Positions 17,898 to 18,477 of a stretch of DNA of 64,000 nucleotides are shown here, in pieces. Both the position numbers and the translations under genes were made by a program. The stretch is from the NCBI GenBank assembly GCA_044892525.1, contig CM097886.1, forward strand, positions 14,570,001 through 14,634,000, given 5' to 3'. The stretch comes from Schmidtea polychroa (Eukaryota). Position 1 is the stretch's first letter. Every line of letters begins with the position of its first letter. Below the pieces are notes generated by a model. The model ran no database searches. It was not told where the DNA came from and saw only the letters and a program-made list of their open reading frames with translations.

Positions 17898-18477
17898 TTA
17901 TCGATGAGACTTTCTCATCATTTTCATTTTATGTCGTAAATTTCTCAATCGATTGGAAATCTTGAATCCTCGCTTTTCTATTTGATTGATTTGATCGTCA
18001 TATTCATCGTTCAATTGATCGATTATCTGAGATCTTTTCATTAGACCTGATATGAATTTTGTGATTGGAGCTCCTCCAGTTGCTATTGTATTTTCAACCA
18101 TTGCTGAAGGATTCGGTACGATATGGTCATCATTGAGTGTGAGATACAATTCACCGAGTTCATTGACTTTATCTAATGCTTTCGGGTCTACTACTGTTTC
18201 AAGTGGCTTTGTTGCTTCTTTAATTGAGTTTTTCAAAAGGATTCCTGGAACTGGAACCAATTTTCCTCCATTAAGATCTTTGTATTTGTTGACAATTTCG
18301 TTGAAATTTGGAAAAGAGAACCGTTTTTCTATGTTTTCCTGTAATCAATAAATCATAAATAATACTGAAGGAAGAATATCAAATGAAATATTTTACTTGA
18401 TCTGAATCATATTGTTGATTTGTGATATCAGATTTAACAAGACATAGAGTAAAAATTGTAAATAAAATAAATTTCAT
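17898..18477 (-). CDS. Spliced secreted precursor protein, 173 aa (exon 1 18,477-18,397; intron 18,396-18,339; exon 2 18,338-17,898)
   Basis: Signal-like MKFILFTIFTLCLVKS; 58-nt phase-0 intron GTAAAA...TTACAG joins in frame; three KR sites; AATAAA downstream. Confidence 0.75.

Follow-up and report, generated by a model that had tools for sequence, protein, structure and literature searches.

We describe a two-exon gene model on the minus strand of a 64-kb stretch of DNA (hereafter the window, meaning the whole of the stretch analysed) that, from its sequence, plausibly represents a lineage-restricted, or orphan, gene for a secretory precursor in an AT-rich eukaryote, probably an animal. For the complete chain, in which an orphan two-exon gene yields a secretory precursor that is subsequently processed, we estimate a probability of about 0.45. 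Removal of a 58-nt GT–AG intron fuses an 81-nt exon to a 441-nt exon in one frame of 173 codons (Table 1), which reproduces exactly the splice and the 173-residue product put forward in an earlier, sequence-only reading of this DNA; the junction bases given there, 18397 and 18338, were likewise correct. The intron contains an in-frame TGA and, at 58 nt, is not divisible by three. Use of its inner AG would produce a 32-nt intron followed by an immediate stop, so that the outer acceptor alone preserves the frame. The start codon stands in the context AAAAATG with an in-frame TAA two codons 5′ of it, and a TATAAAA at 18512–18506, 35 nt 5′ of the ATG, falls in the second unit of a tandem duplication that we consider a candidate core promoter, with no ATG in the interval between the TATA and the start. 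Within this duplication, the TATAAAA is created by two extra bases of the second unit. A TATA box, a first ATG that follows an in-frame stop, a signal-like exon, an obligatory intron, a long exon of coding type and poly(A) signals together make up a complete and compact gene layout.

Table 1 Features of the gene, its predicted product and its surroundings (positions are those of the window)
Feature	Positions	Strand	Residues	Details
Exon 1	18397..18477	-		27 codons; ATG at 18477
Signal-like peptide	18477-18430	-	1-16	Codons 1-16, in exon 1; Lys at 2, 12-residue hydrophobic core, Val/Ser at -3/-1 before Asp17
Acidic piece 1		-	17-31	Net charge -5; first 11 residues complete exon 1
Intron	18339..18396	-		58 nt; GT...AG; 50% T
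Exon 2	17898..18338	-		146 codons + TAA (17900-17898)
Start of exon 2	18338-18321	-		End of acidic piece 1, then Lys-Arg 1
Lys-Arg 1		-	32-33	
Middle polypeptide	18039..18320	-	34-127	94 aa; net charge -2; pI 5.2
Lys-Arg 2	18038-18033	-	128-129	
Acidic piece 2	17976..18032	-	130-148	Net charge -6 over 19 residues
Lys-Arg 3	17975-17970	-	149-150	
Basic C-terminal tail	17901..17969	-	151-173	23 residues; net charge +9; 2 His
Core promoter candidate	18501..18538	-		Imperfect tandem duplication, 18 nt + 20 nt (direct reading)
Poly(A) signal candidates	17782..17873	-		AATAAA at 17873 and 17787, 24 nt and 110 nt past the stop
Repeat in the distal 5′ flank of the gene	18540..19136	-		About 600 bp; repeat family D4
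Adintovirus/Maverick-like element, copy 1	5149-10583	-		Outer bounds; broken genes, compared with the intact relative L002
Adintovirus/Maverick-like element, copy 2	37397-38509	+		Fragment; capsid and PLA2 genes only

This exon structure far exceeds what chance would supply. In a composition-matched simulation, 64 kb would contain 0.07 stop-free stretches of at least 147 codons on average, and 16 of 20000 random 400-nt upstream sequences (~0.08%) supplied an in-frame ATG, a signal-like exon and a donor under a scheme that granted the acceptor and required the donor to be a phase-0 GT at 40–300 nt. Codon-position composition is also coding-like. G occupies 0.25 of first codon positions against 0.14 expected in random stop-free codons (P=6e-5), T is depleted at the same position in a mirror image of the G excess, and GC content falls from 0.44 through 0.28 to 0.25 across the three codon positions. 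An antisense open reading frame of 99 codons at 18052–18351 is the shadow usual for coding exons. The sequence-only reading had taken the 21 stop-free codons that follow the TAA as a hint that the stop is recent or polymorphic; an open run of this length has a probability of about 0.2 at the local composition and is thus at chance level.

Searches for relatives of the product were uniformly empty. Exon 2 drew nothing or noise from Pfam and NCBIfam, with 0 Pfam families at E values up to 10; PDB sequences compared with exon 2, with the 44-residue C-terminal part and with the 94-residue middle polypeptide gave nothing below E=0.15; 5.8 billion protein clusters, searched through a word index, yielded no match; and scans of JGI metagenome contigs and IMG/VR with back-translated patterns revealed no relative. 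Similarity to antimicrobial, venom or viral core families was absent from the collections searched. The sole HMMER match in 1.84 billion representatives, P0001 (E=5e-4), was rejected as a homologue, as it is a 76-residue tandem-repeat artefact whose score adds up four weak stretches. A search for paralogues, as the sequence-only reading had proposed, found none within the 64-kb window by tblastn with the spliced product. Exact-product look-ups of open reading frames from the window returned no records, and these empty look-ups, the presence of a second candidate orphan open reading frame and the ceiling of 72% identity for relatives of a recently duplicated element reading frame indicate that the collections seem to lack the source organism; missing matches therefore carry little weight. 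No membership in a named family is demonstrable for the product, which is best described as a putative orphan secreted precursor and whose layout resembles that of convertase-processed precursors in which the charge of a cationic end is neutralized. Of the lineage-specific bioactive peptide gene proposed earlier, the compact spliced secretory gene is supported; its bioactivity is argued by analogy only, for a product without relatives in the collections searched and with a C-terminal 23-mer that by itself is not significantly amphipathic.

These results bear directly on the possibility that the locus is non-functional, being either an untranscribed or decaying open reading frame or a very young proto-gene that arose beside repeated DNA and has no selected product. 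Such an origin would fit the empty searches for homologues in the collections and for paralogues in the window, as well as an environment that derives from repeats and mobile elements and a distal promoter region that is itself a repeat. However, the co-occurrence of a long open reading frame, a signal-like exon, an obligatory intron, coding-type composition and a repeated motif is jointly improbable, and the empty searches say little where the source organism seems to be missing from the collections. We regard a non-functional locus as unlikely and consider that the model probably corresponds to a real, expressed gene; if it does, secretion of its product is likely.

The sequence-only reading took this gene to be apparently the one intact host gene present, yet the window contains further unbroken open reading frames, for example at 24409–25122 and 5149–5736. 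The first of these, 237 codons on the minus strand, coincides with a local rise in GC content (to 0.35); it matches no Pfam family significantly, lacks a homologue among the 5.8 billion clusters and is a candidate second orphan. On the plus strand, a 126-codon open reading frame at 21097–21477 lies beside a run of N at 20887–21054 and is in part a 51-bp tandem repeat (21240–21385) that encodes a reiterated Pro/Asn/Glu-rich motif; it has no Pfam match. Searches for tRNA genes and Rfam families gave no match in the window.

The predicted 173-residue protein is organized as a series of charged modules separated by Lys-Arg pairs. A rule-based reading identifies a signal-like peptide at its N terminus, and the sole Cys of the protein falls within this segment. 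The three Lys-Arg sites recognized in the sequence-only reading are all present, as are the acidic spacer and the cationic C terminus, with a further acidic piece directly after the signal-like peptide. The middle polypeptide accounts for more than half of the precursor and contains neither a Cys nor an N-glycosylation sequon within residues 34–127; the layout proposed earlier had left this 94-residue, Cys-free piece unexplained. The tests on the Lys-Arg pairs, their P4 residues, the internal repeat and helix periodicity were picked post hoc, after inspection of the sequence, and are thus supportive but short of decisive; read in this way, all three Arg of residues 17–150 lie within Lys-Arg, making three pairs against 0.27 expected (P=0.0006), an enrichment beyond composition of the kind looked for in a convertase or kexin substrate. 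Direct reading places Ile, Ile and Leu at P4 of Lys-Arg 1, 2 and 3, respectively, and an acidic residue occupies P3 in two of the three sites. An aliphatic P4 and an acidic P3 define the type of site preferred by Kex2. Acidic pieces 1 and 2 align over a gap-free 17-residue repeat with 8 identities (shuffle P about 0.004), and their four final residues are identical. A Gly amidation donor before Lys-Arg is absent at all three sites (direct reading). We favour the interpretation that the Lys-Arg pairs behave as motifs and not as accidents of composition, and cutting at some of the sites at least is reasonably likely.

Under the preferred reading, the 173-residue chain would enter the endoplasmic reticulum co-translationally and be cleaved by signal peptidase after Ser16. 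A kexin or prohormone-convertase-type subtilase of the secretory pathway would then cleave after every Lys-Arg and a carboxypeptidase would remove the basic pairs, releasing two related acidic pieces together with the middle polypeptide (94 residues, no Cys) and the strongly basic C-terminal 23-mer. While still in the precursor, acidic piece 2 may neutralize the charge of the tail, as in many host-defence peptide precursors, the charge-bipartite orphan families of Hydra among them (PMC10945409). Our leading guess is that the released tail would be cationic and bind to surfaces or membranes; that it is antimicrobial, or bioactive in some other way, we consider unlikely.

Analysis of helical periodicity places the C-terminal pieces in a different light. 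Taken alone, the 23-residue tail has a hydrophobic moment that 24–34% of shuffles match on three scales (P=0.24–0.34); unlike linear α-helical antimicrobial peptides, it is not significantly amphipathic. Amphipathicity is significant only with acidic piece 2 included: residues 130–173 have a hydrophobic moment of 0.37 versus 0.14 in shuffles (P=0.002) and a heptad a/d occupancy of 0.69 versus 0.45 (P about 0.003), and the 3–4 spacing of hydrophobic residues continues unbroken from residue 130 to residue 173. As this heptad pattern crosses Lys-Arg 3, the acidic spacer and the basic C-terminal peptide, which the sequence-only reading had treated as separate entities, may instead be one helix. 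The AlphaFold single-sequence model of exon 2 is poor (mean pLDDT 48.8) and of low confidence over the middle polypeptide, with its best-scored part being one long helix over the C-terminal stretch (tail pLDDT 56–75), and the sole PDB similarities of the C-terminal part, all of them non-significant, are to coiled-coil proteins.

These observations are consistent with a secreted protein that remains uncut at Lys-Arg 3, and perhaps at all sites, in which residues 130–173 would form one long amphipathic, coiled-coil-like helix that is acidic over its first half and basic over its second. Antiparallel pairing with a partner could then occur, and the Lys-Arg pairs would be residues of the protein surface. 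However, it is hard to explain without processing why Arg before the tail is confined to Lys-Arg with an aliphatic P4, or why an acidic module with a shared four-residue end is present twice, and the structural model in which the long helix appears is weak overall. We consider an uncut protein to be rather unlikely. In favour of a processed secretory precursor count the statistics for the open reading frame, the signal-like exon and first-position G, the confinement of Arg to Lys-Arg with an aliphatic P4, the 17-residue repeat, and the succession of charges from −5 through −2 and −6 to +9; against it count the empty searches for orthologues and paralogues, the tail that alone is not significantly amphipathic, the heptad pattern across Lys-Arg 3, the missing Gly, the large middle piece without an assigned role, the post hoc choice of the motif statistics and the rule-based call of the signal peptide.

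The gene is bordered by repeated DNA. Homology to the repeat in its distal 5′ flank ends 63 nt 5′ of the ATG, and a second copy with 91–97% identity (blastn against the window) occupies 14426–14655, 15657–15779 and 16683–16933. Two insertions, one of about 1 kb and one of about 0.9 kb, interrupt this other copy (14426–16933), and beyond it there is no trace of another gene. The second insertion includes a 17-bp tandem array at 16031–16120 that recurs in inverted orientation at 7390–7461. A signal-like open reading frame is also present within the repeat itself (18549–18848; 14436–14681); its copies differ at a roughly neutral rate, and it is therefore probably non-coding.

Two inverted partial copies of an adintovirus or Maverick-like element, 93–99% identical over about 1.1 kb, are also located in the window. 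The genes of the element encode a double-jelly-roll capsid protein, a parvovirus-type PLA2-like domain fused to an rve integrase, and an A32-type packaging ATPase. Comparison of copy 1 with the intact relative L002 revealed three frame changes and one stop in the capsid gene, four frame changes and one stop in the PLA2–integrase gene, and two frame changes and two stops in the ATPase gene, with the homologue of a 213-residue gene remaining intact. The closest relatives of the element reach up to 72% identity and come mostly from metagenome assemblies, along with one protein of the mollusc Lottia gigantea.

The degraded capsid module of copy 1 is 7 kb from the gene, on the same strand, which raises the possibility that the gene is accessory or cargo to this element. 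It would then be a surviving and possibly domesticated accessory gene, intact while the capsid, ATPase and PLA2–integrase genes decayed, and would encode, once spliced, a secreted precursor from which a basic membrane-active peptide derives. Its strand is shared with the capsid and PLA2–integrase remnants at 5149–10583, and adintoviruses set a precedent in PLA2X and further accessory genes whose products are membrane-active and carry a basic pX-like domain at the C terminus (PMC8502044), a report that keeps a small probability on a cargo origin. However, L001 and L002, contigs of related elements, yielded no relative, and neither did IMG/VR or the protein collections; no Pfam viral core or venom peptide family matches at E up to 10; the interval from 10.6 to 24.4 kb is free of element coding remnants bar one small integrase-like bit; and the second element copy (37397–38509) has no such gene nearby. 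As the interval around the gene lacks element traces beyond that bit and the element contigs lack a relative, the gene is not demonstrably part of the element, and we consider both its survival as an element gene and the encoding of a membrane-active cargo peptide to be very improbable. A milder version of this reading would be a newborn secreted-peptide gene that took its promoter region from repeated DNA.

Other mobile sequences are scattered through the window. A pair of direct repeats of about 1.3 kb (48645–49986 and 62310–63657), spaced by 13.67 kb and 100% identical over the part measured, resembles the LTRs of an element of very recent origin. The sequence between them, 12 kb in length, has strong GC and AT skew, contains no open reading frame of at least 120 aa on the sensible strand, and includes arrays of 74 bp × 6 (54566–55012) and 13 bp × 16.5 (55176–55389). 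Fragments of gypsy-type pol (RNase H and integrase zinc-binding) at 2338–3769 and 32693–33742, and of a DDE_3 transposase at 43586–44098, consist of short separate open reading frames.

Taxonomically restricted secreted-peptide genes are a frequent basis of species-specific immunity, venom and signalling, and invertebrate genomes commonly encode orphan secreted precursors, which come as no surprise to specialists. If it is expressed and its product is processed, the gene described here would add one more to this class. We regard it as a sound candidate for an ordinary kind of object, short of a discovery, and as one that annotation would probably miss; annotation pipelines overlook such genes because they are short, spliced and free of homologues. 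More generally, statistics internal to a sequence can back an orphan gene model without comparative data, and those of use here were the restriction of Arg to Lys-Arg, the repeated module of the pro-piece and the codon-position composition.

Among known systems, the preprodermaseptin-type precursors of amphibian skin and the cathelicidins consist of a signal peptide, an acidic or large pro-region and a basic processing site, followed by a cationic peptide that ends the chain. The predicted precursor shares with them a signal-like peptide, a pro-region, a basic processing motif and a cationic C-terminal piece. By contrast, its tail is far more hydrophilic and not significantly amphipathic, and it has neither homology to these precursors nor their conserved prepro-region or a cathelin-like Cys pattern. 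As a predicted secreted precursor with Lys-Arg sites, it also resembles the KEX2-processed repeat proteins and the yeast alpha-factor precursor. KEX2-processed repeat proteins contain several near-identical core peptides between Lys-Arg or Arg-Arg sites (PMC9769878; PMC6339444), whereas here the acidic pieces alone repeat (twice, with 8 of 17 residues identical) and the sequences after the sites bear no relation to one another. The relatives of the element in the window moreover point towards an animal host and away from a fungus. Neuropeptide and prohormone precursors likewise combine a signal peptide with dibasic sites between acidic spacers and products, an arrangement that the protein matches with its signal-like peptide; unlike them, it lacks a Gly amidation donor as well as any short peptide that is repeated or conserved, and it would release a product as long as 94 residues.

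Adintoviruses are reported to encode venom-like, membrane-active accessory proteins whose C-terminal domain is basic and pX-like, and to have virion and accessory genes that are restricted to animals (PMC8502044), which suggests an animal host for the element in the window. The predicted protein resembles these accessory proteins in its small size, its basic C-terminal domain and the proximity of its gene to adintovirus or Maverick-like capsid and PLA2 genes. It differs from them in having no family match, in its signal-like peptide and intron, and in the 7-kb gap without element coding traces that separates its gene from the element.

The arminins and periculins, antimicrobial precursors of Hydra, comprise a signal peptide, an anionic part and then a strongly cationic C-terminal part, and homologues of precursors of this type are absent beyond a narrow lineage (PMC10945409; PMC11767717). 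No sequence similarity to them was found; the Hydra genes form families of neighbouring paralogues, whereas the gene described here has none in the window, and its product has two acidic modules and, in addition, a middle piece of 94 residues. Like the arminin type, the predicted precursor has an anionic part (−6 over 19 residues) ahead of a cationic C terminus (+9 over 23 residues), with an N terminus that a rule-based reading takes as signal-like, and its orphan status fits the precedent of these taxonomically restricted, charge-bipartite Hydra antimicrobial precursors (PMC10945409).
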